Notes: generated by a model from the sequence alone, not told the origin. Counted from the first letter of the stretch, positions 1-23,897 are shown. The stretch is 64,000 nt of DNA from Anthoceros angustus (GCA_010909165.1 VJWM01000151.1:310001-374000); one strand, 5' to 3'. Numbers and translations: made by a program.

Positions 1-176
1 AGGGCACTCAAGCGTCGCCCTCCACTCGAAAACCACTTCCATGGTCGCGAACCAACCCGATATGGTTGTCCACAATTACAATTTCTTCTGGTCAACCCAA
101 CTCCTCCCACCATGTGTACTCTTCCGCGTAACGTAAGGCCGGAGCTCGATAACCCTCGCTCAAGTAAGCAACGCCT
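1..176. repeat. Further copy of transposase segment 1067-1239
   Basis: Near-identical text CTCCACTCGAAAACCACTTCCATGGTCG...GCTCAAGTAAGCAACGCCT at both places. Confidence 0.85.
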
Positions 177-485
177 CCTATCTATCATCCTCGACAAATT
201 TGTCCAGCTATGGACAACACGCCACTATAATCTTGGGGCACAGATAACCGCCCAAACACATACTTAATTTATTGGTGTTGCAAACCACATATACGGATAC
301 ACGGTATTGTATTGCATTGAGGTGGTAATGGACCAAAAGCCAAACATGATTCACGCTACCGGCTTACCCTAACAAAGGCTCGGACAAGGAGTACAGTGGA
401 ATTTAGACCGGTGAAGCTAGAACCCTATATTTATCTCGATGGAACCATTGCCTCCTCTCCCAATTCCTTCTCCATGGAAGCACGT

Positions 486-3400
486 TTACTCATCTCCGGA
501 GGTCACTCCGTCATCGCCGCCGGACCCTCGCACCATGGTCATCACTATCCTCGTGGGTACTTGGACGAATAATAATTCATTCAACTTATCCTTTATCGCT
601 TTCTTGTCAACAACATATAAATGTTTTCGAGCATTCAAAGACGAATCCATAATAAAGGATTACCGCTTGCTCACAAAGACTGTTGAATATTTTTGGTATA
701 CAAGGATTTGCTTCCTTTCTTCCCTACCTTGAAGCCATGTTCGGTACCGCTTCCCGGAATTATATATTCCTCAACATATCTTCCCTCATATGCATCCGTA
801 TGCTCGGTCATATACCAATGAACGAGGAAGTGAGGTTTGGGCGATTCCAACTTCAGTTCTATGACCTTTCCAATCCAAAATGGCCTGTTGTGAGTGTCTG
901 TGGAACACGGAACTGCTATGAACATTCCTTTATTGATCTCCGCAATATCGCCATTCAGACGTGTCATATCTTCTTGTTGCTTGCCCAAATTTCTATATGC
1001 CCCAAATACATATCGCGTTGTGGAAGTTCACAGTAGCCGCTCAAAGAAAGCCGACGGGCATGCATAAGGGCACCATCCGCCTCCACTCGAAAACCACTTC
1101 CATGGTCGTTGCAACCAACCCGATATGGTTGTCCACAATTACAGCAATTTCTTCTGGTCAACCCAACTCCTCCCACCATGTGTACTCTTCCGTAACGAAG
1201 GCCGGAGCTCGATAACCCTCGCTCAAGTAAGCAACGCCTTGCGTGAGACAAGCGGCGCGCTTTTTATCTCTAGCCATAAGGCTAAAGGAGCCGATTATGA
1301 CCTCCGTGGCACAAACTTCAAAACTCCAAGCCTCCTTCGCTTTCCCACATGTTGAGTCGCACTCCCTCGATTACACCGCTGGCCGGTTTCTCCTCGCGTG
1401 TTATCTTGAATTGATCTTTGGAACGATGATTATTCAATTTACTAAACACCGCCCCGCCCATCCCCGTCTTATTGGCCATACATACTCCAAGTCGGGAACT
1501 TCCAAGATCTTCACCTCCGCCTTGGAGTGTACGCTCCTCGATAATAGTTGCCAATGCGGGCGAGTGCGCTTCCTTGTGTTTCAAGCTTTTAGAGAAGCAT
1601 GAAAACATCCGATCAATTTGATCATGGGTGTGCCCAACTAGCGTGAAGCCCACCTTCACTTTCTCAAATGTTCCCATGTCTACCAACATGTTGAGATACG
1701 CAAAGAGTAGTTGGTTCTTGTTCTCCGCAAGTGTTGTCCAGTTGTTACAACACTTTAGGCAAGACCCCATCATAATTGTGGATAACATCTTGAATGATGT
1801 TTATAGTCAAATTAGGCGTCATTGGAGGTTGGCATAATGCAAATATGCCCTTGCTTTGTGAGTGTAATTGTGAATCATGCACCCCACAACGCAATCGAAA
1901 TACGACATTCTTCATCCAAATTCTTCGCCACCGCAAGAAATGCTAAGCTCGCTTTCTTCCGTCCATTCCATCGATGGCCAATAACATATATTTGTGGGGC
2001 TCCACGTAGCTCTTGCTGCGATGCTTTGTCATCTTCGCCGCTGTGCAGCCGATCTCGATGGGCATCTATGCCGATATTTTTCGCAAACAATTGGTGTTAC
2101 AGTGCTAGACATTCACAGCATTGCATAGGATCATTGCGCATCATGGAACACCCAAGATCGCTGGTATGGCACCCGTATCCGCAACATGAGAATCAGGCTG
2201 CTTCAACCCTTAGGGAATGCTTCTGCCGCCCACCAAAACCGTAAAACAGACATACGGCAAAGGAATCAAAAGTGGACTTTTGGTGAAAGGCGCTGCCCGC
2301 CGGTCATCCTCATACCACTCCGCTGGCTATCCACTAACACCGCAAACCGCCTACCATGACATTCGTGCATCTTGGTGGGAGATGAGAGGCGCCGGCACGC
2401 CGCCCTCTATCCGGAGGCGGCCTCGACGGCAAAGCCGATGTTCACTGCCGGCCATACCTCTTACTATGGAGTGCAATGCCATGAGGAGCATGGAAAACGT
2501 TCCTTCTTACTACCCTAACCTTCCCGACACCTTTACCTTCCCACCCAAAGCTTCCTAGGTTGGCCAAGACACTTCCTCCTCTTCCCTACACCGGGACGCC
2601 TCTTCCATAGAATGCACAAGCCGTAAACCCCGAGAGGTGCTAAGAGGAGTGGCGCGCCAGCCTACGCCCACTCATTGGTCGAACTCGACATGGTAGCCTA
2701 CTTCAATGAGCACGTCCCTTTCAACATGCCACACTCAAATTACAGAGAACACGATGTACTAACCACCTCGGACATGGAGAGTGTGCAGCCGTAACAAAGG
2801 ACATAGAAGGACACATAATGTACTCACCGAAAGGATTCGGAGAATACCTTGGTCGACTTTAGCGCGTGTTTCTAATTGTCGCTTTTAATCGCGCAAAGCG
2901 AGCACGTGGAGAACTGTTGGACTTTGGAATCTTCACCGCTAAAGTTCTCCTCCAAAGTTTCAAAACCAAGCATAGGTGACAAACCGTTGACTGGAACCCT
3001 CACATTGCCGCTTATATTTTGCCCAAATTTGAACTTTGTAAATGTGTCGGAAGATTGAACACATCAACATTGGGGAGCCTTTCCGCCATGAGCAGAATGC
3101 TTGTCCATCCACGCGATTGCACCTCGCGCATATGTAGACTGTTTAGGGTTTGCTCTAAAGCCATCCCACGGTGCATGTGCAATAACCCTTCTCTTGACCT
3201 CCTGTGGCACAAACTTCAAAACTCCAAGCCTCCTTCGCTTTCCCACAACTGTTGAAATCGCCTCCCGATTACGGTCACTGTCGGTTTCTCCTCGCGTGTT
3301 ATCTTGAATTGATCTTTGGAACGATGATTATTCAATTTACTCACAATCGAAATCGTCGCCCATCCCCGTCTTATATACATACTTAAGTCGGGAACTTGAT

Positions 3401-5600
3401 CGGTATCTTCACCTCCGGTCTTGGAGTGTACGCTGCCTCGATAATAGTAGCCAATGCGGGCAGAGTGTGCGCTTCCTTGTGTTTCAAGCTTTTAGAGAAG
3501 CATGAAAACATCTGATCAATTTGATCATGAGTGTGCCCAACTAGCAGGAAGCCCACCTTCACTTTCTCAAAAGTTTCCATGTCTACCAACATGTTCAGAT
3601 ACGCAAAGAGTAGTTGGTTCTTGTTCTCCCGGCAAGTATTGTCCAGTTGTAAGTACAACACTTTAGGCAGCACCCCATCATAATTGTGGATAACATCTTG
3701 AATGATGTTTATAGTCAAATTGGCGTCATTGCGGAGGTTGGCATAATGCAAATATGCCCTAGCTTTGTGAGTGTAATTGTGAATCATGCACCCCACAACG
3801 TGCACTGAAATACGACATTCTTCATCCAAATTCTTGACCACCGCAAGAAATGCGGAAGCTCGCTTTCTTGGTCCATTCCATCGATGGCCAATAACATATA
3901 TTTGTGGGGCTCCACGTAGCTCTTGCTGCGATGCTTTGTCATCTTCGCTCGCTCATTGTGGGCCGATCTCGATGGGCATCTAAGGCTCGATATTTTCTCG
4001 CAAACAATTGGTGTTACAGCGTTAGACATTCACATTGCGACATAGGATCATTGCGGATCATGGAACACCCAAGATCGCTGGTATGGCACCCGTATCCGCA
4101 ACATGAGAACTGTGCTGCTCAACCCTTAGGCGAATGCTTGCCCACCAAAACCGTATAAAACGGATACGGCAAAGGAATCAAAAGTGGACTTTTGGTGAAA
4201 GGCGCTGCCCGCGGCGTCATCCTCATACCACTCCGCTGGCTATCCACTAACGCAAACCGCCTACCATGACAATTCGCATCTTGGTGGGAGATGAGAGGCG
4301 CCCCGGCCTCTATCCGGAGGCGGCCTCGACGGCAAAGCGTATGTTCACTGTCGGCCATACCTCTTACTATGGAGTGCAATGCCATGAGGAGCATGGAAAA
4401 CGTTCCTTCTTACTACCCTAACCTTCCCGACACCTTTACCTTTACCCAAAGCTTCCTAGGTTGGCCAAGACACTTCCTCCTCTTCCCTGGGACGCCTCTT
4501 CCATAGAATGCACAAGCTGCGTAAACCCCGAGAGGTGCTAAGAGGAGTGGCGCGCCACGCCCACTCATTGGTCGAACGACATGGTAGCCTACTTCAATGA
4601 GCACGTCCCTTTCAACATGCCACACTCAAATTACAGAGAACACGATGTACTAACCACCTCGGACATGGAGAGTGTGCAGCCGAACAAAGGACATAGAAGG
4701 ACACATAATGTACTCACCGAAAGGATTCGGAGAATACCTTGGTCGACTTTAGCGATCGTGTTTCTAATTGTCGCTTTTAATCCTGCAGCGAGCACGTGGA
4801 GAACTGTTGGACTTTGGAATCTTCACCAAGTTCTCCTCCAAAGTTTCAAAACCAAGCATAGGTGACAAACCGTTGATGGAACCCTCACATTGCCGTTTAT
4901 ATTTTGCCCAAATTTGAACTTTGTAAATGTGTCGGAAGATTGAACACATCAACATTGGGGAGCCTTTCCGCCATGAGCAGAATGCTTGTCCATCCACATG
5001 ATTGCATCTTGCGCATATGTAGACTGTTGTTTAGGGTTTGCTCTAAAGCCATCCCACGGTGCATGTGCAATAACCCTTCTCTTCAGCTCCTCATACCTAC
5101 TATGGCCAATGCAATATACCCTGCGAAAAGCTCTGAGACAGCATCGCATTCTGACCGACCCCCATAGATGAGTCACAACTTTATCATTGTGCTGGCCACT
5201 GCGATCGACGTGAACAAGAGATTCCAGAAATGTCTCCTGCTCCTGTCTGCCCATTCGTAGAAACCGGTATCTCTGCTCCCGCAACCTTTCTATAGTCAAT
5301 TTCTGAACACACATTTGGTTGCAACAGGGCTTGCGGAAATCAAGAGACGCAGCTTCCGCTTCACATTTCCTCATCGGCACACCAGCAGCGCGTCTTTTTT
5401 GACCAGTTGAAACAAGAGCCTTTGTTGCTATCAAGCTTTCGCTCAATGGCTTGGGATGGTATGATTGCGGGCATGTCCACCGGTGTTTGAAAGACGCCAT
5501 CCTCCTCGTCGAAGCCGACCGCTTTCCGGAGGATACCTTTCCCACGGTCATCCATAGTAGGAAATAAGTCACTCAATGCTTGAGGCCCTCCTACTCGGGC
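486..5600 (-). pseudogene. DDD-type transposase (Sola-like, DUF7869-like), frameshifted and internally duplicated, with a C-terminal Tudor/PWWP-like segment and acidic tail
   Basis: ORF fragments show N-terminal 'KPCCNQMC...CCLRAFRRVYCIGHSRY', the catalytic triad segments 'LLAIDGMDQ', 'LYLQLDNTCRENKNQLLFAYL' and 'FLLVGHTHDQIDQMFS', then 'PFWIGKV...VHWY' and the C-terminus 'RKHLYVVDKKAIKDKLNEL...GDE*' (stop 486-488). The 5' end is approximate. Confidence 0.8.
1299..5082. repeat. ~1.9 kb tandem duplication inside the transposase gene (copies ~1299-3194 and ~3195-5082)
   Basis: GACCTCC(T)GTGGCACAAACTTCAAAACTCCAAG starts both copies and ...AATAACCCTTCTCTT ends both. They are colinear with scattered 1-6 nt indels. 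Confidence 0.9.
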
Positions 5601-6900
5601 AAGCAGTGTCCACTACTTTGTGCATTCTCATGCAATGAGCGACGGGCTCCTATCTAAGGCATACAAATTGAGGTTTTCTTGTCCGAGGCACACCCCTAAT
5701 GATGGTGAAGATGAACCTGCGGCGCCCATTGTGGCCACCATCGAACGAGCTGCAAATGCAAGCCACAAGATTGGTACGTAGGAACGGAATTCAAGCAAGT
5801 AGGAATGACCGTTCGATTCTCTCCGTTATACCTTGGAATGCGTTGCCTTTTGGGAAGGCAGAGGTCCACACACCACATGCCGAGACCGTATTTGAGGCAC
5901 GCTTAGTATCCTCCTCCTTTGTGCAACGTCCTCCTTGCGCCGTTGTCTTCTTGAATTGCACACCGCCGCAAGAAGGCGGAGGCGATGCACCCGACGGATG
6001 GAATAGAGTCCGTCAAGATCTAAAGAAGCCCAAAACTCGGCAAATTGAGAACAGGACAATCCAAACCTCATCTCCATCCAAAGGATGAGTAGCATTCAAC
6101 ATGTTTGTGAAGGGTGGTAAAACGAGCGACGACCTCAAGTGTCGGGTCAGGGAACGAAACCCTTGCGGCGAGTGCAAGGTTAAGGCAAACTTGGGTCAAT
6201 CATTCGGGACAAATGGACGTTAATAGCGTATCGCTTAGATATGCTACCGCTAATGGGACAAGGAATGGCGGCAGCTTTAACTACATTGCATTTATGCTCG
6301 GCATCCCACATGGAATGATTGTGGCGCAATGGGGATTTTGATTACCATGATGGTGATACTTGTGGGTACTCCTACTTTGGTTTGGTGGAACTTGCGGATG
6401 CGAATGAAAAATATTTCTACCCGTTCCTATCCATACATACGAGTTTTCCCGAGCCAGGGTTAGGTTTTGCTGGTACCTTCATGTGGGATACGCCTGGACA
6501 TGATGTTTGAGCATCCTTTCAACCCTAATGTCGATGGGGTTATTATTGCCCAAGGGAAGAAACAGGATTATCTCTTTTTACACTGGAGCAAAACAGGTGT
6601 TTGTAAGTCGAGGTGTGCATCAGAGACACCGTCTCAAAAGGGAACACTTCAGCTGAAGAGTGCGCCCATTCGGCCTCGTGACGAGCGCCAGAAGGTCGGA
6701 GCGCCGCCGATCCGCAGCCAGACTATCCGCCGCCGCCGCCTGTGAAGCCCGGAGCAATTGCGCACGCCATCGCGCTCGCCACGCCCTCCCTTGCCAACAT
6801 CCTCTAATCCAAGGTCGACACGGGTTTTGCTCTTCCATCTTCCACCTCTCGAGCAAGAATTGCGGTCGTCATCGTGGTTTGGGTGGCCTTCCAGATGGCA

Positions 6901-9900
6901 ATGGGTCGCAGGAGCAAGAAGGACCAGGGCGATAGAATCCCTGATCACCCTGAACCCTTACAGAAGGTGAGGAGATCAAAAGCGCCAGGGAAGGGGAAGC
7001 CATCTGCCGCAGGGGCGCCCATGGATGCACCTCAAGGGCGCGGAGGGTCAGGACCAGTAGCGATGGAACAAGCTGGGCCCCAGCTTCAGATTGGGTCGCA
7101 ATTGGTAGGAGCTGCGAATCAGGCGAAATCCGGGAGCCTTACTTCCGGTAAGGCTAGCACAACCAAAGGTCTTCCTACTGGTGACAAGGGAGACAAAGCA
7201 AAGCGCAGGCCTATTCCATCCCCTTACGCCTTTGAGGAGACTTTACATACGAAGGCTTGGAGCCCGATGGATTCCACACCTCTTTTGGATAAGGACTGGA
7301 TGTTGGTTCAAGAATCGGAGCCAGGATGAAGGTATTTTCGGACACCACTCTTCAAGTTGTGGATCATGGGATACAAGGATGCCTTGCCTAATCACGAGCG
7401 AGGGTTGGGTTGTGTGGCGAACTCGATATGTGTCAAGGAGACCCATCCGCAATCGCTCAGAACAAAGCCACGGAGTTTGATGAAGTGCCACAAGGGCCCG
7501 AGCTATACAGGCATTTGATCTCGTGTTCAACAACCGATCATCAAGAAATGCGAGCCCCGTGAGGTCGTGCATCTTTCGCGAATGTAGACGAGAACAAAGC
7601 GGTAATTGTTCAAGGCATTTTGGGGTAGTGAGACCTCTGTATGTTTTTTCGGTGCTTTCGCTTGGTCTCTAACCACAAATGTTGTGTCAATCAGGGCCTC
7701 AAATTGGAAATGCATACATCAGGCCCTATGTGCGTAAATCACACAATCGGTTGTTCAAGAGGAGTCATGTCCCTAAGGCGCACTCGAGCACTGCTGGTTG
7801 AGGAGGAACATCTCATCTGATGATTGTGAAGAAGGAAGCGAGCTTGGACCGAAGATGAAGACGATGGCCCTATTCCCGATATTCTGCACACGATGATGAT
7901 CAATCGGATGCGCAGTGAGGTTCGAGATCCGGCTCGTGGAGACCTTAGGGCTGCCGGTGTTAGGTATGAGCCGAGGGAAGGCTGGGCGCCCCTGTGGAAG
8001 AGGCAACCCGGATTTGGTGACCCCGATCCGGATTGGTTTGCGCTTCCCTGGGCAGCCGGCCGCCGGGCGCCCGGTCGTCATTCTGGAAGCACTGCCTGGG
8101 CAAACAGCAGATCATGGTGATCCTGAAGAGGGGCGCTGCCGGCCGGCGCCTCCTTCCCTCCATGCAGGATGTGAGTGGAATAAGAGCAAGAAGGAAAAGG
8201 AAGGCGTGAGGGCCATGCATCAAAGTAGAGGAGTCGTTCAGAGAGCTTGAGCTGGCTAGTGGACCAGGAGAAAAACCAATAGTATGCAAAAGGCGCAGGA
8301 GTTCTTGGAGGACATACCTTCCGTCCATGTATCAACGGACAAGGAGCGGTTAGCGATGCTATTCGGGATGAAGACCCCTAACGCGCATTAGGAATCGGCC
8401 TATTCCAAAAAGGTTGTTTTGGAGAGTTTTGGTGAAGTTGGAGAACCTTCGCCAAGATCACACCTCACACCATGCTCGATACGGAGGGTTGACGAAGCAT
8501 GGACAAATTACTTGGCACGTGATTTCAAGGGCGGATTGAGGAAGGCGATGCCTCTATTATGTATGATTGACCCCGCAGAGTGAAGACCGAGCAAACTTGA
8601 TTGGGACAAGTTCGGGCAAAAAATACGTCATGGGGTTCTTGGAGGCAACCACACCTATGCATGAAGCACTGCGATATATGTCCCGGAAGACTTTCGACGT
8701 GGAGGCCCATGTGTATTGTGGGCGAAAGGTGAATGCGAATTCTTGCAACAGATCACAATGTGTTGTCCGACAGGAGGAAGAAAATGAATTTCATTGAGCA
8801 AGTCGATATTTGAGGGACGATGATTATCGAACGGACGGAGTGATGACCATGGCATGGAAGTTTAATCATAAACCGCTAGGGTTGATTGACACGATGAGGG
8901 GCGAGAAGACGATGTATATAAGCAACAAAGTGGACAACAGGACTCATATTTTGTGCATGCGAGGGCAGTATGGGAGAATGTGGATAAGATTTTTACAAAG
9001 TGGGAAGCCGGGAGCTTAAGCAAAAGAAACATGTCGCGGTGGCACGAGCAAGAAAGGCAAAGGAAAACTAAGGTCATCAAGAGTCAAAGAAAATCGATCG
9101 CATGTGAAGTCAAGGATATGCTTGCAAAGCCTTGGAAATCGTTCAAGGAATACCATCAGTGAATGCGCAATGATACTAATATCGAACGGAGAAGGTTCTT
9201 GTGGCTTATTGACCTAAAGGGCATGGATGATGATATCACCCTCCCAAGAAATTTCACATCATCCAAGTGGCGATGGCGAAACACCTTGGGTGCTCATCGC
9301 TCGAGGAGGTGCGGAAAGAGTATCCCCATCATGCAATGATAGTGTGCACTTCAAACAAGATTTGCCGGAAAGGTGAGAAACACTTTCTATTCAATAGTTC
9401 TGTGGAGTTGGGTGTGTGGAGGCGGTGGAGGGCGCGGCGGGCCGCGCCCACAAGGGAAGCTGCAGTGGAGGCGCGCGGCCGGGCGCCCGCCAGCCGGGCA
9501 GTGGAGGGCGCGCCCGCCGCCCACCGCAGCCGGCTGTGAGGGCACCGCGGCCGGGCGCCTGTGAAGCTGGGCCGATGGAGGGCGCGGCGGCCGGGCGCCT
9601 CCACCTGTGAAGCTGGTGATGGAGCCGCGGGCGCGCCTCCACAGAAGCCCGCCGATGGAGGGGGCGGGCGCCCACCCGTGAAGCTCGCCGTGGATGGCGC
9701 GGGCCGGCGCCCACATGTGAAGCTCCGATGGAGCGCGCCGGGCGCCTCCACCGAACGATCGTAGAGGGCGCCTCTTCGCATACGAGCGACGATGTGGTTT
9801 TGTTTTTAACTTGCAGCAACTAAAGGACGTTGAGGTTTTGGCGAAGCTGCCGGATGACTTCCGTCATTTCATATTTGAAGTCAACAACTGGAAAGGACTT

Positions 9901-10919
9901 GAAAACGAGCAAAGGGCTTTGGCTGATAAGGACCTGGAAGAAGGTCTTAACATTTTTACCGTGCCTTCCAGTGACAAACAGGTTCAATACCAGGTGGAGG
10001 CAAGAAATATTCTTGACATGCGGGGGTTTCTGAGGACGAGGGGGTACACGCTCCTGGTAATGGACGTTCCACGAGGATTTGACATTGGCCCTATGGATAA
10101 GCGGGTGGACATGGCAATGATGCGAACAGTGTTTCAGAGCTTTGCGGAAAAGACAACAAGTGAAGAATTCCGCATTATAGTGATGCATGGGGTCGAAGAA
10201 GCCCACACCGTGGAATCCATGCGACATGGATGTGGAAAGGCGGATTGGTATCCTTCATATGGGATAAGACCAACATGCATAATGACAGGCGGGTTTGAGA
10301 CCGTGGAGTACATCACTGGGATGGTGTCTCAAAAGACACAAGCACAAAGGATAGAGCTCCTATGCCGAATGCTATGCACGGACGTTCAACAATGGGAGGT
10401 CGGTTATAGGACACGCCATCGTGGTGAAGAAACAGTGTACCGCCCAATGACAAACTTGTGGTATGCCCTTATCAACGCCCACCGGGTCTTCTTATGAAAC
10501 GATAAGGACCTTCTCAAAGGAAGGGACCGGGTTCTTGATGCATGTTCGGGCAGCGGACCACCACACTTGCCGCATCTGAGTGGACGAATCGCATTGCGCT
10601 TGAGGCAGATTTGAGATGTGCAGGTACATTCCTCGTGAATACATGGTTATGAGGTGCTTCCGGATGCAGGAAGAGCTTACATTTCAACCGCATCGCCGAG
10701 GACCATCACACCTGGGCAAAGGAGGTATGTATCAAAAGATAGTCCAAGGCACAAGTTGTTTCTTTGAGTGCGACGCGGCATTTACAACAGTGAACTTTTG
10801 GAAGATGGGCAGCAAACGTTGGATGATGTATGGCACCGCAGCTTGACGCACCCAAGGGTGATGTGAACGAAGACGAGAAGGCCTTGGAAGAAAACGACGA
10901 ATTTGAAGACGGAAGATGA
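6901..10919 (+). CDS. ParB/Srx-like domain plus beta-class N4-C/N6-A DNA methyltransferase-like protein; multi-exon, frameshifted in this assembly
   Basis: ATG at 6901 (MGRRSKK...). ParB-like segment 8482-8810 ('RRVDEAWTNYLARDFKGG..PLLCMIDP', 'VLGGNHT', 'EAHVYCG', 'ILATDHN', 'MNFIEQV'). MTase motif IV region 'YTLLVMDVPRGF' at 10045-10080, 'FIWDKTN' at ~10254, and motifs X-I-II reconstructed as 'CPYQRPPGLLYETIRTFSKEGDRVLDACSGSGTTTLAASEWTNRIALEAD' (10464-10610) after three 1-bp homopolymer corrections. Acidic tail ends at TGA 10917-10919. Confidence 0.75.
9410..9770. repeat. GC-rich ~39-bp degenerate minisatellite (~9 units) within a putative intron 9373-9816
   Basis: Recurring GTGAAGCT..CGATGGAG(G)GCGCGGCCGGGCGCC(T)CCA units, flanked by an AAG|GTGAGA donor (9373) and a TTTTGTTTTTAACTTGCAG| acceptor (9816). 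Confidence 0.7.
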
Positions 10920-11320
10920 GCGATTAGAAACCTCGGCCGTTGTCTTAGACTGGTGATGTGAGACGAGTCGCAGATGAGCCCTCCTAATGATCCAAAGGTA
11001 GACGCCTGTATGTGGTCCTATAGAAACGATAAGTTTTGTGGTCGGATAGAGGTATACTGAAGGTTGGCCACTCCATAGTTTGCGTGTAAAACCTTCTTGA
11101 AGTGGCGGAATTTTAATTTTCTTTCCTCCGCTTTGGAGCATTGCTTTCACGGTTCAACTATCGCCGCCACCGGCGATAGTTTACCACACGCACATGGAAC
11201 CGCGTGAAACCGTTGTTTCAAAATGGGATCTATCGGACAAGGGTGGACATACGTCACCAACGTGAAAAATCATAGTTTCCCGAAAGGTGCGATGTTTGTC
11301 AAGAGGGTCCACCAGCAACT

Positions 11321-11363
11321 GAAGAGGGTTTGTATATTCCCCCTCTTGAAGATATATGGTGTT
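11321..11363. repeat. Terminal inverted repeat (MTase-side end) of the large transposon
   Basis: Aligns with the reverse complement of 21613-21660 and with 23862-23893, including the subterminal AAGAGGGT motif at 11301. Confidence 0.75.
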
Positions 11364-11760
11364 TTGTCTGCGTACTGTTTTCTTCTGGCCTCCGGCACCA
11401 TCAGCTGGAGCTGTAAGAAACAAACTTCCCTGGCCTTATCCTCCACTGAAGCCGAATATAAGGCGCTCACTGATGCCTGCAAGGAGGCTGAGTGGAGAGA
11501 CAAGCCGGATTCACCAACCGTGCTCGACAGACCTACACTTGCTAGTGATAATATGAGCGCCATAGCCCTGGTGTCAAACCCTAGGTTTCATGCTAGGACT
11601 AAGCACATAGAGTTGTATCACCACTACATACGGACATGCAGCGTGGGATCGCTAAAGTAGAGTATGTTAGCACACAAGAAAACACTGCCGACATATTTAC
11701 TAAGGGGCTACCAAAATCCAAACACTTTCAGCACATGGCTGCTTTGGGGCTCCGAGAGTT
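11364..11760 (+). mobile_element. Ty1/copia RNase H remnant
   Basis: 'SAYCFLLASGTISWSCKKQTSLALSSTEAEYKALTDACKEAEW...SDNMSAIALVSNPRFHARTKHIELYHHYIR...EYVSTQENTADIFTKGLP'. Confidence 0.92.
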
Positions 11761-11949
11761 CAACTATCCCTAGCTCCTGTCATCTTCAAAGACTGTACAG
11801 GACTATGGCTACTTGTCTCTAGTATTTGGCACACCACACAAAATGGGTTTGCACCTTGGTGGCTTCTGCCACATCTTCCTTCAGGCCCTTAAGTCTTCAC
11901 GTGGTGCTGCCTTGGGCTCATAGCCTTCCTGCACGAGCCACAGCACAAG

Positions 11950-12599
11950 GTACAGGTTATGTGGCTGCCTAGTGGATGAAGCATACAGAGATATCCAAGC
12001 GTAAGCAGCACACATGTGTTAGGTTTCCTTTCCTTACCGCGTACAGGCGTTTTCCACACAAAGGGCACAGCTGACTCCTGAAGGCACACACACTGCAGCC
12101 TCTGGACCCACGGCGCCTGGCTCTGTCCACTTCTATGTCGTCAAAGGCTTGGTCAGCAGCTGCAGCAGCTCTTTCCACAGATTCTTCAACAAGCAGAGCT
12201 TGCTGCCTGGCCATCTCTGCCCGCTTCACATCCAGCAGTTTCTCCATCTCGGCAAGCGTTGCAAACACGGCTTCCACCTGATCAGCTAGCAGAGGAGCAG
12301 TGGGAGGTCCTCCGAGAGCACGAGCTCTGCGACGAGGGACGCTCGCCACCTCATCCTCCTCATCAGTTGAGTTGGGCTCAGGATCCAAATTTGTGATGCT
12401 TGGCTTTGATGCCCGGAGAATTTCGAGGATTCAAGGTCACCATTGGAGCGCTGGGGTTTCGACGAGAGTGGTCACCAGGAGCCTGATGGTTGGGAGCTGG
12501 ACAGTGCGCTGGGTTTCCTCTCCGTCCGCGCGCGCCCGCGCCCGCCGGCCACCGACATCGGGCGCCGCTTGTTTTCGCCAGGCCGCGCTTAGGAGCCAT
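11950..12599 (-). other. Antisense ORF remnant (acidic/coiled-coil region plus CxxC-x6-CPxC) between copia pol and the putative LTR
   Basis: 'STDEEDEVAS...EMEKLLDVKRAEMARQQALLVEE...CSVCAFRSQLCPLCGKRLYA', followed by a GTAAGG...CTAG intron-like segment. A MAPKRG start at 12599 lies in another frame. Confidence 0.3.
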
Positions 12600-12816
12600 T
12601 GCCGCAGAGTCAGACAGAGCTCGAGCGAAGTCTTCATCTGCCGCGGTTTGCCATTGCTTTAGGGTGAAGCATGCGCAGCTTTAAGAAGACCGTAAATGGA
12701 GCTCCATGTGTCTCGCATTTAGGTTCGGTCGAGTAGCTCGAGCGTAATGTTACGCGATGATGCTCAGTACCTTCTGCCTATGGTCATTTATATAAGCCAT
12801 CAAGGTTTAGTGGGAG

Positions 12817-12939
12817 TGTTAGGAATATGAAACCTTAGCATAGCTTATATAGTTATCTAGTTTACTCAAGTTAAGTCATTAACCCAAGAGTCACCAGTTT
12901 TGTATTTAAAGAGACATCATTCACAATTTTATTAATTCA
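12817..12939 (+). mobile_element. Possible short 3' LTR of the copia element
   Basis: Purine tract AGTGGGAG directly followed by TGTTAGG, an AT-rich body, and a CA near 12939. No partner LTR in the window. Confidence 0.35.
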
Positions 12940-14369: not shown

Positions 14370-15450
14370 AATGACCTCGGTCTCTAAAAAGTGGAGCCTG
14401 TCTCTACTTCTCAGGAGACCTTGTTGTCAGATCATGTACGTTCAAGGGGGACAGACAAGGGCGGACTCAGTGGCTTTAGGAAAGGAGCTTCTTCTAGAAT
14501 TTTACAACAAATGGAGCCGAACACAGTGGCAATTCGTGGACTACATGCAACATACTTGGGAAGGCCAACTAGGTGAGTGTGTTCGTTGTCATGTTCTTGA
14601 AGAGTCTGCAAGTTTGTGCAATTCAACTATTATTCTTATGCCCTTTTCGTCCTTCCAGATATGTTCTTGAAGGCCGCTCGCACAATGCCTCATGCAGGAC
14701 AAGACTGCGCTTCCTCCATTGAAGCGTGGCATAGATTCTTGAAGGAAAGGTTAGCTTACTCAAAAGTGGGGATTCATGGTCGCCGAGTTGATTGGTTGCT
14801 TCATCAATTATGTTTTGTGGTGGCTACTCACTTTTGGTACCAAAACCATTGTAAGGAGGGAGGGTATGTGGTCAATACCAAGGTGAACAATATTGCATAC
14901 GGCTGCAAATGATATCTCGAGAGGACATGGTGTCCCTCCCAACGGAGCCATACGGTGTGGCTAAGTGTATGTCCACATCGATCCTTGAAGGCAACTTATG
15001 TGATTGACAATCCGATGTCTATGTGGGCAACTTGCAACTGTCCACAAGGACAACAAGCATTTTTATGCAAGTATGTCGTGAAAGTCCAGCAGATGCTTGG
15101 AGTCTTTGCCCATACATTAGTCCTTGGTCGCAAGTTTGCAGCTACCAATGGCAAGGTGGGGGAGGAAGTGGACACAACATTGCCATTGAGTTGTCTTCAG
15201 TGTACAGAGGGTGGTGAAATGTCAACCTTGCTAGCTTCATTGGATGAGTACTGCACACCAAGTGTACCACCGAGGGTTCAATCTTGCAAGTCCCGCTTTC
15301 AAGAATTGAAGGAAAAGAAGATGGCAAGTGTGGAGGAAGGGTGCAAGGAGTTGTGGGATTGTGTGTACATGAATGATGGCATTGTATTCGAGGCTGACGT
15401 GCTTGTTCAGAAAACGTTACTAGCTGTCAAGGAGCTGATAGCATAGATGG
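14370..15450 (+). mobile_element. MULE/SWIM-type transposase remnant
   Basis: 'QFVDYMQHTWEG', 'AGQDCASSIEAWHRFLKE...GRRVDWLLHQL' and the SWIM finger 'WATCNCPQGQQAFLCKYVVKV', with stops and frameshifts. Confidence 0.75.
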
Positions 15451-15789
15451 AGGAAACTACTGGTCACAGTGAGCGCCCCCCACTACAAGCTTTCCAGCCA
15501 GTAGGAGGCCCAAGCAACAAGGCTAGGCTTAAACCCTTCTTCTCTCCTCCAAAAAAGAAGAAGAAGAAGGTAACTTGGAATGTAGGAGGAAGCAAGGAGA
15601 ATGCGTAGAGTACATTGGAAGACATCTTCAGGGCCTTAGTGTTTGTGTTAGACATAAACCTTGATATGGTCAATTTTTTGGACAAGTGAACCAGATCAAA
15701 CCTGTCACCACTGCACATCGATTGTAAAAAATACATTCTTCACAAAGCATATACAATTTAGGTTTTTATATTATACTTGTCTCTTTGTA

Positions 15790-18700
15790 GTTATCGCAAA
15801 AGCCTTGGTTTGGTGGTCGGGCTAGGCGTCTGCGTGTAGGACGTCCCGGTCTCAATCCAACTAACTTGCATTTTGTGTGTCGGACTGTTCAACACATGTT
15901 TAGCCATGTTCACCCGGCGGTAACCCTTGTTGGGTTTGGCGTCACCCGGGTTGCCCTTGTTGGGTCTGACGTGACCCGGGTTGCCGGTGGCATACACAGG
16001 TATATACATATTCATATGGCACATTGAGAGGTATGGACTACATGGTCATGCCCGCTCTGCACGAGGGAGTCAGCGGGCCCCGCACCTGGCCACCTGATTT
16101 TTACCTGGGGTCGTGTACGCGGGAAGGTCCGGAGTAGGCCACTCCGGACTAAACTCCGGAGTAGAACACGATAAGTCTGCCGGGAAAGGTTACTTTGGAA
16201 AAGGGATGGAGCGTAATAGGCAAGGGGGCCACGTGTATGGTGCTGAGAGGAGGACTGCATGCAGGCATCGAAGGGCATGGAAGGACATGAGGGGTTGTCG
16301 GCCGTGTGTGAACCACGACCCAAGGACATGCGCCAAGAAGGCGGCGCGTAAGGCTAGAGTACACGGCGTGACTCGAGCGAGTTCACGGTAGCAAAGGACG
16401 CCTTCCCGCCGCCCGCTATTCCCGACGCCCGACGCCGAGAAGGCCATTCTCTCGACCGACTTCTCAGCAGTTTTCGTGGTCACTCGCACTCAGGCATCTT
16501 GCTCTCTAGCGCTTCCTCTTCCGACGCCCAAGCGTATCACCGAGCGGCCATCGCCTTCGAACTGCACACTCCTCGCTTTGGAACTTGGCGGGAGTATCCT
16601 TGCCCACCATCCCTCAGCAGCGGATCAGCCGAAGCGCAAGCATGGGACCCAAGAAGGCGGCGGAGGTTTGGGAGCCCTGGCGCTTGGTAGAGAAGAACAT
16701 CGTCACAAGGCGCTATCCAGATTTCGGGCCCTAGCTGGCTGAGGCGGAGGAGCTGGTGCAGGAGTGGCACTTAGACATTTTTCGGGCGGTATGGACTTTT
16801 GATAGCGTGGCGTTGGTTCGGGAATATGCCCGGAAGATGTTGGCGGCAGCCACCAAATCCGTCCACTCTAAGAGCTTGCGAGAGGACCCGAGGAGGTGGA
16901 GGTCCTTAGGGCGGTCTATGATCGCCCAGCAAAGGAAGTAGGGGGCGTAGTGACGGAGCCCTTAAAGGTGAAGGGGAAGGTGGAGGCCATGAAGGTAGTG
17001 CTCCTGAGTCCGGAGACGCAGCGGTCCTCTAACGGGTGGCTCATGTCGGACCTACTAGACCAACGAGTGAGGGCAGTGGCGTAGATTATCGTCCACTGGA
17101 ACATGCTCACCAAGGTAGACCACTGTGGGATGTAAACTCGTGTCGTGGGACACGGTGAGGTCCACATTTACCCTCAATGTCGTTGTAGTCCTGGGATTCG
17201 CTCCCAAGGGAATGGTTTGTGCCAAAAGACGCTATCTTCTATCACTACCAACTTTTGCCTAAGCCTAGACTGGACCGCTACCACTTCTCGCACCTATCTA
17301 CTCCACTACGACTACCTCCTGTCTTATTTAACTACCACGGATCTAACTTCCCGACCGCAAATCTCGTTCCACGACCCCCGTTCCGGAGCCACTACCACGG
17401 TGACTCTCACCACTACCGGGTAGTTGCTACAACCACCGAGGTGGGTCCCACACCAAACCCTAGCAACTCATCTCAAGGCGCCATGCTACCGGGATCCTCC
17501 ACACGGGGCCACGCTCATGATCGTGTTATTCGCACTCCACACTTCATACAAGACTGATTCCTAGGGACCAAAGTTCCTAGGATACCTCACATCCGCTCCT
17601 AACACACACACACACACACACGTAAAAGGCGCCACACCCACACGATTTCCACCAGAAACGTTGTTTCCCTTGTGCACTTTCCACTGCAAGCACCGGTTCG
17701 AGTTTCACAAACCACACACACAACTCTTCACTGTTAACGTCCCAACTCGCTCTCCTTCTCTTTCCACTCGCGATCTCACACCTCGCAACGCGTACAGCAT
17801 TTGATCTCCCCTTCACCCGATCTCTTCTCTCCCTCTCTCTCTCTCTTCCTCAATTCGCCCGCAGGCTTCCAACCATCCACTCAAACACTCTCTGATTTCG
17901 GAACACAACTGTTAGGATCAAGGGTGAAGGAAGAAAGAATCCTTAAAGAGAGTGTATGAGTTACATGACAAGAAAGAACCACTAAGTCAGCAAGCCGCAT
18001 AACCATCTTATTGTCATAGAGATCCATTGACCGCAGCAAGCAGCCACGAGCAAGCTCCACCCGCCGCCAATCCCTTGGTTTCCTCCTCCGTTGTCGCAAA
18101 TTGCTCCATCACCTCCTTCCCTGCCATGGAGCAAGCTCGACCACCCCTAGGAGCTGCCTCGACACCACCTCACCAATCGGACGTCTCCAACCAGCCATAG
18201 GTAACGTGGGGATCTCAACCAGGAGTTATCTATTGTGGAGGGCAAAAGTTGCCCCTCTTATACATCGGCCGGGCCGTCCTGTTTCCCCCCAGATTTCCAG
18301 ATCCTAAAAAAAGCTAAGGGGACGCGCCCACAATTCTAAGCGATCTTAGGTCCAGTGGGGCATCCTACCCAAATTTCATTCCTAGGATGCTACCACCTAT
18401 TGCCTACGCTATCCGCGCGCCCTCCCCCGACTCGTCCGCCTGGCCCTTCGTCCTCCATCGCCGCCGCCACGAGCCCTCCTGCCACGCCGCTGATCTGACG
18501 GGTTTTCCCACAGGACTTCCACCTCACTGTCACTGCTGGACGTCCTAATTGAGGGCATACCCTGCCCCGGAGCTTCCGCCTCTTCCGCTTGCCGCCTATT
18601 GCTGAGGATTACCACCGGTTCCTCATCCACCCAAGCCTGGACCTCCTCTTCACTCAACTCCTCCAAGGTCGCCTCCGCATAATAGGGGGCCAATCCCCAC

Positions 18701-21612
18701 ACTCTGGCGCAGTGGTAGAAGTATGCACTGGGTCCTCACTTGCGAGGTAGGACCCGATCCTCCTATTTCCACACGCACATGGACAAGGAAGTTAAGCACG
18801 CTGCTCCCCATTCACATATAGACCAGCACGTAAGTTTCCTCATCCATGTGCCGAACATAATAGGACCTCCGCAGTGAGGTGCTTACCCTCCTCCCGTAGA
18901 CTACACCGTTGCTCGGTCCATGTCCTCGCCGCCGCCACGAGCCCTCCCGCCGCCCATTGCCGCTTCGCTACCACGGTAGTGGTCTCCACGACTGTTGGTC
19001 CAAAGAGCCCGGTAGGTGTTTCACCACCTTGGTCGGTCCTTCCTCAGAGTGCCTTCCACTACCCCGGCCGTAGTCCCGCCACCTCGCCTCTTCTTTTTCT
19101 CGTTCGCCACGTGCCTCATCCTTCCCCTGCTTATACTGCTCCGCCACCTTATGGACCTTCTCCACCGAGGCCGCCTCGCCTCCGGGCTCGCAACAACTCC
19201 CCGCATCTCCCGGTTTGACTCGTGGGCATCCTTGATTTGAGCCATGAGCGCCTCGCCGACTCCATGGCCTGCAGCCTTCTCCCGGCCCCGCACAAATCCT
19301 CCTGCTTGATTCTTATCTCCTCTAAGGCCCGCTTGTCTTCCTCCAGCTTGCTTATACCGGCTTCTCCTTCACAAACCCGGCCTTCACCACTTCCTCCCGC
19401 CCGCCTTGCACACCGAGCCATGTGAGAGCCAAGGCCGCTTGGTCCAACAAATCCGCTTGGGCGGATCATCGGCGTCGCCTCAGAATTCCACCGCGCGGCC
19501 CTGCACGCCATCCTCCGTCCGAGCACCTTCCTTCCCAACAAAGTGCGCACTCACCACCTGGCGGCCCACCTGCTGCTGGAGTCCCTTGAAAATCTCTTCC
19601 CATGCCGAGGAGGGGTCCGCCTCGAGGTCGCCCCTAATTCCTCCTGGCCGGCTCATCCGTGCATCCAAGTCAAGAAATTATCTTCCTGACCGCGCCTCTT
19701 CCTCCGCCACCTCCTGCTTGGCTTTCATTTTCTTTGCTTTCTCGTAGCGCACCCGCCGACTGGTGACGCTGGCCCACCTTCACTTTTTCACTGCCCCGCC
19801 ACTCCGGTCTTCCTCTTCTTGCCGGTAGAAATTTCCTTCTCTTCCTCGAATCGCCTGCCATGGACTCCCACCGTCCGATTCCTCCTCAATTTCCTCCTTA
19901 GGCTCCTCCGCTTCCACTTCACCTCCCGACGGCTTCCACATATGAAGGAGGCCACAATTTCTACCTCCGGCAATTAGCATGCGCATAAAGATGAACTAGG
20001 AATGGTGAAATTAGAGAGGCCGGGGTAGGAGAAATCGATTCAACCTTTCTTCACTCAACTTCTCAAAGAGGATTCGTCTCAATCGATTTTCGCCTTGACA
20101 ACTTCATGGAGGAACAACGAAGTGGTCGACAAATAATCCCGCTTTGTGTCAGAGGAAGCAGAAGCCATCCGCTGCACTCCATTAACCGTGGCTGCTGCAA
20201 TTCTCGCGCCACCAACCATTGGGTTCCCGGATTACGCCCGCCTCACTGTGGCGGCCGCCACTGTGCTCCTTTCCGAGAAGGTTCCATCACCAAACCCCCG
20301 CCTCCTCCTTCCCGCCCATACACTTCCCTAACCAATGCCAGTCCCAACTCGAGGTTTTGCTCTAATTCCCTCGCCGGTTGCTTGTCTTTAGGTGGCGAGC
20401 GACTCGCACTCCCGACCTGTAATTCCACCGCTTCTCCATGAACCCAGCCCGAGCTCCTTCACTGTGCCCCTCGGACTTTCCAATGGTCCATGTTTGGCCA
20501 TTGGGCAAGCGCAATCTCACCGTGGCTTTGGGCGCCATCCTTCCGCAGAGTCCCGCCTCGCCTCAAACGGTGACACTGCCAATCGCGGTGCCTGTGGTTC
20601 CTACCTCCTCAGAAGCTGCCGCCACCGCCTTCCTTCCACAGGGGTTGCGACTTCACCGGTGAGGGTTCGAGGCGGCCTCCACCACGATCGCGCCTCTCGC
20701 CTCCAACCGATCACGGTCCGCCTCGAATGCGAGCCTCGACGACTCACGCCGCCACAGGCCCACTCCTCACTGCCGCCACCTCCACAGCCCGCCGCTTGAA
20801 CGCCTCGTCACCCTACCGGTTTCCTTAGGGTTAAGTTTGGCTTCCCCTACCACTGGTTGTCTTCTACGACCGCTCGCCCACGCCCCAGTCCACAACCCCA
20901 TACTCATTCAGCTACCGCCCGGCTGGGTCGACCCCTAACTCAAGACTGACAAACCCCAAATAACCACCCCCCTACCTCGCATATATAGACCTTGTAGTGG
21001 ATATCTGAGGTCCATGGGCCAAGGAACACCGAGTTTCCGGACCATTTATTATCTAACCTAGGCAATAAAACAAAAAGAACTCCATAGGCCAAGGACATTT
21101 TTACTATGAATATCCTCAACTACCGTCAATCTGACTTATTTTCACACCACTCTTAGCAAAAAAACAAAAAAATTCACTTCAGGGCACATTTTAACAGAGA
21201 TTTCCGAGCCTAGATCGTTTACAACCACCTTGGTGACAATTTGCTGGTTTTCTTGCACGCCCTTCAGAGAGGCAAGAGGGCGGATTGGGGGCGGATCATC
21301 TTCGTCTGTATTGCTCAGTAGTCGAGGAAGTTGAGGAACGAGAGGCCACCCCCGTCGGCGTTGTCCCCGTTTATCGTCCATGTGTGGGGACACCTCAACC
21401 TCCTAAAGGAAGGGGAAGAGGAGTGAGCGCTCCGGAAGGGGCTGGCGACCCTGCCACAGGCGGAGCGGGAGGAAAGAGCACAGGAACCGGAGGGCCGTCG
21501 GCCCAAGGTAAGGCGTACTCAGGAGGACGAGGACTGGGAGAGAATTCCGGACTCCATATGCCTGGAGCGAACCCCCTCTCCACCAAGGGAAGTATGGGAG
21601 GATATTCCCGCT
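15790..21612. mobile_element. Nested copies of a GC-rich repeat family, probably LTR-retrotransposon (gag-like) derived; no RT or integrase recognised
   Basis: 16130-16560 is a diverged inverted homolog of 27850-28260. Minus-strand coiled-coil/acidic ORF fragments at 18400-19990 include a degenerate CCHC-like remnant at ~18710-18760. An LTR-like segment at ~17565-18393 has CA/CT microsatellites. Confidence 0.45.
17602..17621. repeat. (AC)10 microsatellite
   Basis: Read directly from the sequence. Confidence 0.95.
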
Positions 21613-23893
21613 AACACGATATCTTTCGAAGGGGGTGAATATCCGAACCCCCTTCTGTGACATGGAAACCCTCTTAGCACATTCCACACAGTCCCGAAAT
21701 ATGCTTTGCCTCGCTTTCAAGAAAGGTCGACTGCTTTCCAACGAGTAGTTATCATGAAAACCCGCTTCCAACACACAAAGACAACAATCCATGGAAGGCC
21801 GGGCCTTCGCTTTGTTTTTGAGGAAGAGGGAAAATGAGATCATCAATTGCCTCACTACAACGGGTCCAAAAGTTATTACGAACACGTAGAAGAAGCACAT
21901 CTAGGTGCCTATGTAACCAGAACCTACTCTCTATGACTAACTTGTGACTCATCGTGCTAGAGCGACTCAATCCATCACGATGACCAAATTTCAATCCGCC
22001 TCTCGCTCATCAAAGCTATCGCTCGCCCAAAGCCCTTGAGTCTGCCTCCTCCCGCTTTGGTCTTCACCGACGAGCATTCAAAGAAACCACTGCGCTTTCA
22101 AAGAGTCCTTCTCGTTGATACACACCTCCTTTGCCCAGATTGCGCAAGCCCGTGGGCCTCTAATGTCAATTCTTCACAAGATCCGCAAAACCTCATACCC
22201 ATGGATCCGCTAGGAATATATCCGCACACCTCAAGTCGCCTCAATAGAGGGCATGCTAGCGCCTTAAATGGCCGTGCCCATGCGCCCATAAAATCAACAA
22301 GAAGTTTTTCATGCCCCTACAGAACTCGAACCCATGACCTACTCATGCTCATAGTGTTTCCAAACAACAACAACAACAACTTTATTTTATGTCCACTAAG
22401 GATGGAGAACCATCATATAGAAGTACACGATTTAAAAAGCACACTGGCACGTGAGAAGCGGTCAAACCACTTGAGTAACTATCCTATGTTGAAACACCCT
22501 AGAAGCACTAATTATTTATTTTATCAATGGCAGCCCATGTACAAGGCTTGCAGGGGAAGGGCGCCGGCCGGCCGGCGCCCATGTACAAGGCTTGTTGGGG
22601 AAGGGCACCGGTCGGCCAACGTTCTCTTATTGAGCGTTCTCTTATTGAAACTCCTCTCATGCCATGGTTGAACACATTTTCAAAAACACCTATGGACCTA
22701 TTTTCATTCATTCATTCGTACTATACTATGTGCGCTCAAGAATATATGGGCATGTTCAGGTACCCGCCAAAACGTGAAGCATAGCATTACTTTGAGATCG
22801 TAGAAATAGACTGTGTAAGTAGAGGTTTTTGTTCACCAAACGGTCATCCTCTATTATGAGTTCAACTTGACTGCGGAAACATTTGTACGCTGTGGATAAG
22901 AAGGCAATCAAGAATAACTTAATTGAATTGCGAGGCTTTATTCAACCAGCGAGTCAAAGTGCCACCGAGGATAGTGAAGATGATGGTCATGATGTCGTGC
23001 CCAACGAAGATGATGGCGTGGAGTCCGCGAAGAGTAGGAAACCCTCCGAATGTTAGGTCATCTTCAACGGGCAATTGGTGAGGTTATGCGTGAAGCTCAA
23101 TTCGTAGTTTGAGTGCACATTTCCAAGCGCAGACATATTTCCTCGAAAAGAGTCTAGGCCCATGATAGGAATTTGGTTGTGGTTGTCTCTGTGCCGTAGA
23201 CTTCCCATGCTTAATAACTTCCAATGTTCAAGCCTTTTTCCATTACATGCGAAGGACATGTGGGAGTGTGGTAGTTGCGCTCGGCATTGCGGCATACTAA
23301 CAGTAACACACGATGAGCCATGCATGTTTTTCTGCGATATGTTGGCGGGAACCGGTTGCCACACTTTTCTTCATTCATCGATTGCATTGTGGATCAACCA
23401 TGTGATTATATTTATGGGCACAATTGAGGGTGTGCGAAGCCACCCACCCACCCCACACCCAAAGTCTTTTGTACACACATCCCGCTATGGGCTCACTCTC
23501 CGCCGCAAGGCATCATCGCAATGTGAAAAGGCGCCCGGCCGCCCTACTCCTCGACATGCTTTGCTCCCGCCATCGGGTTCGCCTCATCCAATTTTGATCA
23601 CCGTGTTTTTACGAATCTTTAGGGTTGTTGTGCGAGAAAGACCCGTGACCGCAAAGAATGGCCCTTGTCATGGGTCTTAAATGCACCCCAAATAGGGTTA
23701 CCTCTTGCACCATAACCCTTCACTGCATGAAATGGACCTTGTATCACCGGGTTCTGTGAATTTCCACCCTTCTTTTCTCGCCTTACATTCATTCATACCT
23801 CAAAACCACCAGTTCAAGACCCATGTCAAACCCCTTCAGAGATATATTGAAAACCCCTTCGTGAATATTCACCCCTTCGAAAGATATCGTGTT
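21613..23893. mobile_element. Non-autonomous, internally deleted member of the MTase-carrying TIR family; ~30-bp TIRs and 4-bp TSD CGCT
   Basis: Left end AACACGATATCTTTCGAAGGGGGTGAATAT; right end ATATTCACCCCTTCGAAAGATATCGTGTT; CGCT at 21609-21612 and 23894-23897. Contains the MTase 3' remnant (-, ~22030-22300) and the transposase 3' remnant (+, ~22870-23040, 'RKHLYAVDKKAIKNNLIEL'). The empty-site homolog lies at 26994-27026 (inverted). Confidence 0.9.
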
Positions 23894-23897
23894 CGCT

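Follow-up and report, generated by a model that had tools for sequence, protein, structure and literature searches.

Genes and features of the locus

A 64,000-nucleotide stretch of the genome of the hornwort Anthoceros angustus (GCA_010909165.1, VJWM01000151.1:310001-374000), here called the window, was analysed for the transposable element that fills its first 11,363 nucleotides. Two genes lie in this element: the remains of a DDD transposase gene on the minus strand and, head-to-head with it on the plus strand, an accessory gene with a ParB-like region followed by a DNA methyltransferase (MTase) domain. No long open frames were found in the first 11.4 kb of the window, and coding remnants were clear on both strands. 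The best overall explanation, held with good confidence, is a dead copy of a Sola1-type transposon with a ParB-like/MTase accessory gene. A Sola1 element bearing such a gene has already been published for the brown alga Ectocarpus (2025).

The same plus-strand gene was found on three contigs (L001-L003) from another sample, SRR33208241, and a smaller, related element lies further downstream in the window. The features of both window elements are collected in Table 1.

Table 1. Features of the large element and of its deletion derivative (positions are those of the window).
Feature	Position	Strand	Evidence or remark
Remains of Sola1-type transposase gene	1-5612	-	truncated by window start
Transposase N-terminal region with CC..C motif	5572-4952	-	homologous to transposase parts in other-organism contigs
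Transposase catalytic core motifs	AIDGMDQ 3888-3868; LQLDNTCRENKN 3652-3617; GHTHDQID 3538-3515	-	
Transposase C-terminal domain	1027-674	-	homologous to transposase parts in other-organism contigs
Head-to-tail internal duplication, ~1.9 kb	1298-3203 vs 3195-5091		91.4% identity over 1953 columns, blastn; repeat families D1-D19 collinear
Second internal duplication	19-176 vs 1080-1239 (span 19-1239)		94%, spacing ~1063 bp
ParB-like region, frames 0, 2, 0, in-frame stop	8452-9147	+	tblastn with 488-amino-acid open reading frame (ORF) of L002, three collinear matches
Motifs of ParB-like region	VLGGNHTY 8635-8658; ILATDHNV 8739-8762	+	
Conserved segment between ParB-like and MTase parts	9246-9341	+	50% identity, 32 amino acids, to L002
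GC-rich tandem array of ~8 units (36-40 bp), a GGCGCC-type palindrome in every unit	9420-9750		Tandem Repeats Finder
MTase N-terminal half, open in frame 0, with motif IV equivalent DVPRGF (10063-10080)	9790-10335	+	phmmer relatives; tblastn E 1.6e-17 to 1e-9
MTase C-terminal half	10449-10619	+	tblastn with 294-amino-acid ORF of L002
Right terminal inverted repeat (TIR), element ending ...GATATATGGTGTT	11321-11363	+	alignable to either terminus of the small element (21613-23893)
Non-autonomous deletion derivative, related subfamily, inverted orientation	21613-23893	-	termini AACACG..CGTGTT
GGCCGG(N)CGCC sites	8141, 9477, 9549, 9589, 9702, 22560, 22570, 23530		

Transposase gene and family placement

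A first-pass annotation of this DNA had called a DDD transposase on the minus strand. The call was borne out by a Pfam match of the piece 3952-3386 to DUF7869 (PF25273, E 2.7e-49) and by the presence of the Sola1 core motifs. A second DUF7869 copy was matched at 1800-1321 on the same strand (E 7.7e-23). This copy is damaged: it is interrupted by several stops and has lost the DxxxENKN region. The DUF7869 core is present twice because it lies in the part of the transposase gene that was copied in the ~1.9-kb duplication. The second internal duplication suggests that the 3' region of the gene is tandemly repeated too, the repeat continuing past the window start. Compared with the transposase of L002, the window transposase showed 59% identity over 144 amino acids.

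The curated transposase of the Ectocarpus element Sola1-1_Ec32 is printed in the supplement of PMC12477816. The core motifs DGMDQ, QLDNxxxENKN and GHTHxQIDQxFSCF are common to this protein and the window transposase. They read LLAIDGMDQ, LQLDNTCRENKN and LVGHTHDQIDQMFSCF in the window, against CMMDGANQ, VQVDNTVAENKN and MVGHTHIQIDQIFSCF (shorter form GHTHIQIDQIFSCF) in Sola1-1_Ec32, as compared by eye with no alignment score. A motif similar to the N-terminal CC..C motif was also present in the Ectocarpus protein. The published termini of Sola1-1_Ec32 are AACCG..CGGTT, with a target site duplication (TSD) of 4 bp (PMC12477816). Because the transposase motifs, the AAC..GTT termini and the 4-bp TSD agree with those of the Ectocarpus element, the hornwort family is placed in Sola1 on these shared characters.

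Ends of the elements and flanking sequence

Position 11363 had been proposed as a terminus of the large element. It is regarded as the true right terminus, as this end can be aligned to either end of the small element, with the similarity breaking off exactly at ...GTGTT. A left TIR of the large element was not found within the window in searches allowing up to three mismatches or in searches with a degenerate pattern. The left end is placed outside the window, with positions 1-11363 judged to be the larger part of the element. The window thus contains just the right end of this element, and the TSD and the TIR pair were established on the small element.

The small element has TIRs of 25 nucleotides that are 96% complementary, and the 4-bp TSD CGCT was observed on both sides of it (21609-21612 and 23894-23897). 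A paralogous sequence at about 26981-27084 holds a single CGCT and aligns straight across the joined flanks of the small element. Since this paralog represents the empty site, the boundaries of the small element and its 4-bp TSD are proven. The first-pass annotation had described the small element as a deleted relative in which the 3' ends of both genes are kept between the TIRs. This description held. A patch of 137 columns corresponds to the 3' end of the MTase gene (71% identity) and one of 154 columns to the 3' end of the transposase gene (69% identity); both are collinear with the large element, inverted, and located between the TIRs.

Immediately beyond the right terminus, a plus-strand frame at 11364-11657 reads ..SAYCFLLASGTISWSCKKQ..STEAEYKAL (..ISWSCKKQ..SSTEAEYKAL..), presumably RNase H coding sequence from a pol gene of the Copia type. 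No Pfam match was obtained for this flank. The Sola1 element seems to have been inserted into a Copia element. On the far side of the small element, short direct repeats were observed at 24341-24386, 24755-24800 and 25526-25882, and the sequence from 24 to 28 kb has a GC content of 62-64%.

Methyltransferase half of the accessory gene

The accessory gene had been described as a gene of about 4 kb, head-to-head with the transposase gene and with MTase motifs in the order IV...X-I-II. The orientation and the motif order were both recovered: motifs IV, X, I and II begin at 10063, 10458, 10531 and 10593, respectively, which is the order of the beta class. The recognisable conservation of the gene spans only about 2.4-3 kb (from ~7830/8452 to 10850) of the claimed length. 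A motif X-like sequence, VVCPYQRPPGLL, was read at 10458-10493 in frame 2 and motif I, VLDACSGSG, at 10531-10557 in frame 0. A motif II-like sequence followed at 10593-10619 in frame 2, the frame in which the C-terminal half reads TTTLAASEW..IALEADLRC.

An exhaustive phmmer search with the open piece of 258 amino acids at 9721-10494 returned four true relatives, P0001, P0003, P0004 and P0007, at E values from 4e-10 to 5e-4; the MTase half is thereby linked to a small family of eukaryotic proteins. The piece itself gave no Pfam match, no match to PDB sequences by phmmer and no meaningful Atlas neighbours. Word-indexed homologue searches gave three proteins and one protein, and the alignment used for modelling was shallow (8 sequences). 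The N6_N4_Mtase profile (PF01555), proposed as a check on the MTase call, matched none of the window pieces, but two of the homologues scored above its gathering cut-off of 26.7 bits: P0003 (446 amino acids) with 30 bits and L002 with 39.7 bits, both matches being confined to positions 163-217 of the 221 in the profile.

The assignment of class was extended with P0008, another protein of the family. Over motifs X-I-II it matched the PDB sequences of TTHA0409 (2zie, 1.6e-5), DpnA, the rotifer enzyme N4CMT, RsrI, MboIIA and CcrM, and its sequences DGCSGSGST and AVDVDP correspond in the alignment to the region of VLDPFaGtGTT in TTHA0409 and DpnA. Matches to phage DNA MTase families in PHROG reached 1.7e-18, and the nearest language-model neighbours were phage N6_N4_Mtase clusters. 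An AlphaFold2 (AF2) model of P0008, built from the alignment of 8 sequences (predicted TM score, pTM, 0.63), found CcrM in Foldseek with an E value of 4e-11. The VIA comparison gave Z scores of 18.1 for CcrM (over residues 61-316), 16.2 for RsrI, 15.7 for PvuII and 15.7 for rotifer N4CMT, so that beta-class enzymes scored 15-18 against about 13 for MT-A70 enzymes. By the sequence matches and the predicted fold of its relatives, the 3' half of the accessory gene is shown to belong to the MTase fold and to the prokaryote/phage beta class, as had been suggested in the first-pass annotation. The accessory protein of working relatives is about 1100 amino acids long; its N-terminal part is probably ParB-like, and it carries an amino-methyltransferase domain with the circular permutation of the beta class.

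Motif IV and catalysis

Beta-class enzymes are marked by a catalytic motif IV of the form (D/N/S)-P-P-(Y/F/W). This form was not found in the family. The window gene has DVPRGF at this place; P0001, P0003, P0004, P0008 and L002 have DLPRGL, and P0007 has DIPYGF. DLPRG occupies residues 89-93 of P0008, after the strand 83-89, at the place where DPPY sits in beta-class enzymes. The S-adenosylmethionine (SAM)-binding motif I and the acidic motif II have been preserved, motif I reading VLDACSGSG, in a frame-shifted context, in the window. The proposal that the transposon writes N4-methylcytosine (4mC) or N6-methyladenine (6mA) was not supported, the family being without the canonical motif. Activity of any kind is also unsupported for the window copy, which is pseudogenised.

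An explanation for the changed motif could be that the MTase-like domain is a pseudoenzyme, in which the beta-class fold and the SAM pocket are kept while base-flipping catalysis has been lost; it would then serve the transposase as a partner in DNA binding or regulation, by analogy with METTL14 as the partner of METTL3. This explanation is possible but less likely than not. It fits the conservation of DLPRG or DVPRG in the window, P0001, P0003, P0004, P0008 and L002, which come from at least two organisms, and its position after the same strand as motif IV in beta-class enzymes, together with the retention of motif I (GSG) and of the acidic motif II. However, the aromatic residue is present in DIPYGF of P0007, and an arginine is able to stack on a flipped base as well. 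The long open frames at about 50% divergence point to selection, but are silent on which activity is selected.

Probable ParB-like region

The ORF of 488 amino acids in L002 aligned to the window at 8452-8658 (frame 0), 8733-8804 (frame 2) and 8953-9147 (frame 0), and by these matches the stretch is identified as the conserved part of the accessory gene upstream of the MTase half. VLGGNHTY in the window corresponds to VLGGNHSW in L002 and P0010. The glycine and the histidine are retained in both versions, and the arginine of the G-x-x-R / DGxHR motif is absent. Atlas features assigned to the L002 homologue were DUF3723 (0.97) and a ParB_N cluster (0.91). A model representing the second-ranked, unnamed Atlas feature, made from a protein other than that of L002, resembles ParB_N clusters with TM scores of 0.53-0.57.

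ParB/Srx-like motifs had been claimed for this part of the gene. The conserved stretch was confirmed, but no hidden Markov model (HMM) match accompanied it, and the claim is left with the degenerate GGNH(T/S) motif and the language-model lead. The assignment as ParB-like is probable, in view of the Atlas feature match, the degenerate motif and the published description of the Ectocarpus protein.

GC-rich array and palindromes

The GC-rich array sits in the variable gap that separates the ParB-like and MTase parts, and seven GGCGCC sites were counted in 390 bp of this region. A repetitive coding linker is one possible interpretation of the array, an intron another. The corresponding gap is variable in the other-organism loci: it measures about 65 bp in L003 and holds a different tandem repeat (31 bp x 3) in L002, at 5244-5329 of that contig.

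The sequence GGCCGG(N)CGCC occurs eight times in the 64-kb window, against 0.19 occurrences expected, and none of the eight sites falls outside the two elements. In the middle of the deletion derivative, two sites combine into a perfect palindrome of 22 bp (22559-22580). That GC palindromes of the GGCCGGCGCC type could serve as self-binding sites is in line with a published idea, and is only suggestive.

State of the window copy

The MTase gene contains at least three frameshifts and several stops, the frameshifts lying in its 3' half. Judged from these lesions, the window copy is dead and non-functional, with a pseudogenised MTase gene and a transposase gene carrying two internal tandem duplications. 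Real decay is seen in the divergence of 8.6% between the duplicated halves and in the lesions of the second DUF7869 copy.

It is improbable that the frameshifts and stops are errors of a long-read assembly and that the copy is in fact intact and possibly active. A read check yielded one run of 98 Mb (X1) that shares words with the locus, in the form of short multicopy contigs with a high summed word depth. Over window positions 5500-11400 the X1 contigs differ from the window mainly by indels of 1-2 bases, mostly of a single base, with few substitutions, and at 10332-10499, where one frameshift lies, there were no substitutions and one gap. Such a pattern would fit assembly errors. However, X1 is a tiny run, the family is multicopy, and X1 does not represent a cleaner version of the locus: when its indels are applied to 10026-10195, they destroy the open frame that is homologous to the relatives. 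The run is therefore no proof that the window frameshifts are errors. From the RNA run X2, no sequence could be placed on the window. Polishing error is also no explanation for duplicated halves of 1.9 kb that are 8.6% apart, and the second DUF7869 copy, with its stops and its missing DxxxENKN region, speaks against an intact gene as well.

Linkage of the two genes

L002 encodes a DUF7869 transposase of 619 amino acids on the minus strand, head-to-head with plus-strand pieces ending in N6_N4_Mtase. L003 likewise has a transposase N-terminus head-to-head with the accessory gene. The accessory gene is inherited with the element, because L002 and L003 share this arrangement and traces of the two genes survive in the deletion derivative. 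Comparison of the loci shows the MTase-bearing gene to be heritable cargo of a Sola1-type TIR transposon, as first claimed from the window alone, and the pairing to be real and inherited. Chance adjacency is excluded, and the notion of a host or foreign gene that stands beside the transposase gene here by accident or through a one-off capture has hardly any probability left: the window does hold a single large copy with both genes and lacks its left end, but the same head-to-head arrangement recurs in another organism (L002 and L003), remnants of both genes lie between the TIRs of the derivative, and the same architecture is published for Ectocarpus Sola1-1 (PMC12477816).

Downstream of the Sola1 element in L003, an ORF with a Peptidase_C48 (ULP-like) domain was observed at 11918-12892 on the minus strand and one with a RecQ helicase domain at 15394-15961 on the plus strand. 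These two ORFs may be part of another mobile element.

Interpretation

Several points weigh against reading the locus as a Sola1-type element with a ParB-like/MTase accessory gene that acts on its own DNA. The placement in Sola1 comes with the caveat that it is based on motifs and the TSD, without a tree that includes Repbase sequences. When 26 stop-free pieces of the window were compared with Pfam, DUF7869 was the only family matched, with no N6_N4_Mtase or ParB match. The ParB-like region gave no Pfam or PHROG match in the window, L002 or P0010, and the L002 region had no match among PDB sequences; a single-sequence AF2 model of the L002 region was discarded for its low predicted local distance difference test score (pLDDT 38.6). 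Motif IV is without the second proline and, in most members, without the aromatic residue, and catalysis appears doubtful on that account. Four of the eight GGCCGG(N)CGCC sites lie in one tandem array and hence are not independent, and the sequence is absent from the other-organism loci L001-L003.

If the locus is taken as a dead copy of such an element, a mechanism can be proposed for its working relatives. The DDD transposase (DUF7869) would excise the element and reinsert it between its AAC...GTT inverted termini, with duplication of 4 bp of the target. The accessory protein would latch onto short GC-rich palindromes, GGCCGG(N)CGCC, which in this window are confined to the elements, and might then methylate the DNA of its own element at N6 of adenine or N4 of cytosine. 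Alternatively, given the motif IV form D-(L/V/I)-P-R, it might bind the element DNA without catalysis. Either way, the element would be marked or regulated. Bacterial Dam methylation couples the transposition of IS10 and Tn5 to replication, and is a possible model for the accessory protein.

A more specific proposal is a self-marking module, in which the ParB-like part reads the element-specific GC palindromes and the beta-class MTase domain, in which a conserved arginine replaces the aromatic residue that stacks on the base, works with an altered chemistry or target. This proposal is speculative and rather unlikely to be correct. If true, a transposon of the streptophyte lineage would possess an epigenetic mark, or a switch of replication timing, of its own. 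For the algal examples, neither the changed motif IV nor co-evolving cis sites have been described.

Transposons with a DNA-modifying enzyme of their own could place epigenetic marks, or escape them, without relying on the host, and are a plausible route for bacterial amino-methyltransferases into eukaryotic genomes. A dead copy says nothing on activity; its value is that of one data point for a survey of the family.

Comparison with known systems

The closest known system is Sola1-1_Ec32 of Ectocarpus, in which a gene for a protein of 1104 amino acids, ParB-like and with an N4C/N6A-type MTase, lies opposite the transposase gene (PMC12477816, Genome Biol 2025). The authors suggest that the accessory protein binds and modifies its own element (PMC12477816). 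The two elements share the Sola1 DDD core motifs, AAC..GTT termini, a 4-bp TSD and the accessory gene on the opposite strand. They differ in host lineage and in size: the Ectocarpus element is 21.5 kb long with TIRs of 282 bp, whereas the hornwort element is much shorter, with TIRs of about 25 nucleotides. The accessory proteins were compared through the published description of the Ectocarpus protein. Motif IV of the window family is DVPR/DLPR.

The MTase half resembles CcrM, M.RsrI, M.MboIIA, M1.HpyAVI, M.PvuII and the ParB-MTase fusions of phages in its permuted IV..X-I-II order, in its fold and in sequence over X-I-II. These phage and bacterial beta-class enzymes have a motif IV of the form (D/S/N)PP(Y/F/W), in contrast to D-(L/V/I)-P-(R/Y)-G in the window family. 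The latter is also eukaryotic and transposon-borne, with a protein of about 1100 amino acids and a ParB-like part too divergent for ParB HMMs.

Bacterial-type N6_N4_Mtase domains in eukaryotic genomes are known from N4CMT of the rotifer Adineta vaga and from MpDN4MT1 of Marchantia. Both are host genes with canonical motifs and demonstrated 4mC activity, the rotifer enzyme being fused to a chromodomain, whereas the window gene, which encodes a predicted MTase, is carried by a transposon and departs from the canonical motif. Dam-type MTases fused to ParB and a helix-turn-helix (HTH) domain were described in chlorophytes and chytrids by Iyer et al.

A further parallel comes from the red alga Bostrychia, in whose Plavaka (EnSpm-like) elements the accessory genes PAG2 and PAG3 are reported, one of them ParB-bearing and one N6A-methylase-bearing (bioRxiv 10.1101/2025.02.11.637652). 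The ParB-bearing gene is adjoined by inverted-repeat tandem arrays, for which a role in self-binding has been proposed (bioRxiv 10.1101/2025.02.11.637652); they parallel the element-specific GC palindromes of the window elements. Plavaka belongs to another transposase superfamily and carries an MTase-SET protein and a ParB-2-oxoglutarate (2OG) oxygenase as two genes, whereas the ParB-like and MTase parts apparently form one gene in the window. The hornwort locus extends this class of elements, first reported in algae, to a further host lineage, and contributes to it a catalytic motif of non-canonical form as well as a candidate cis motif.

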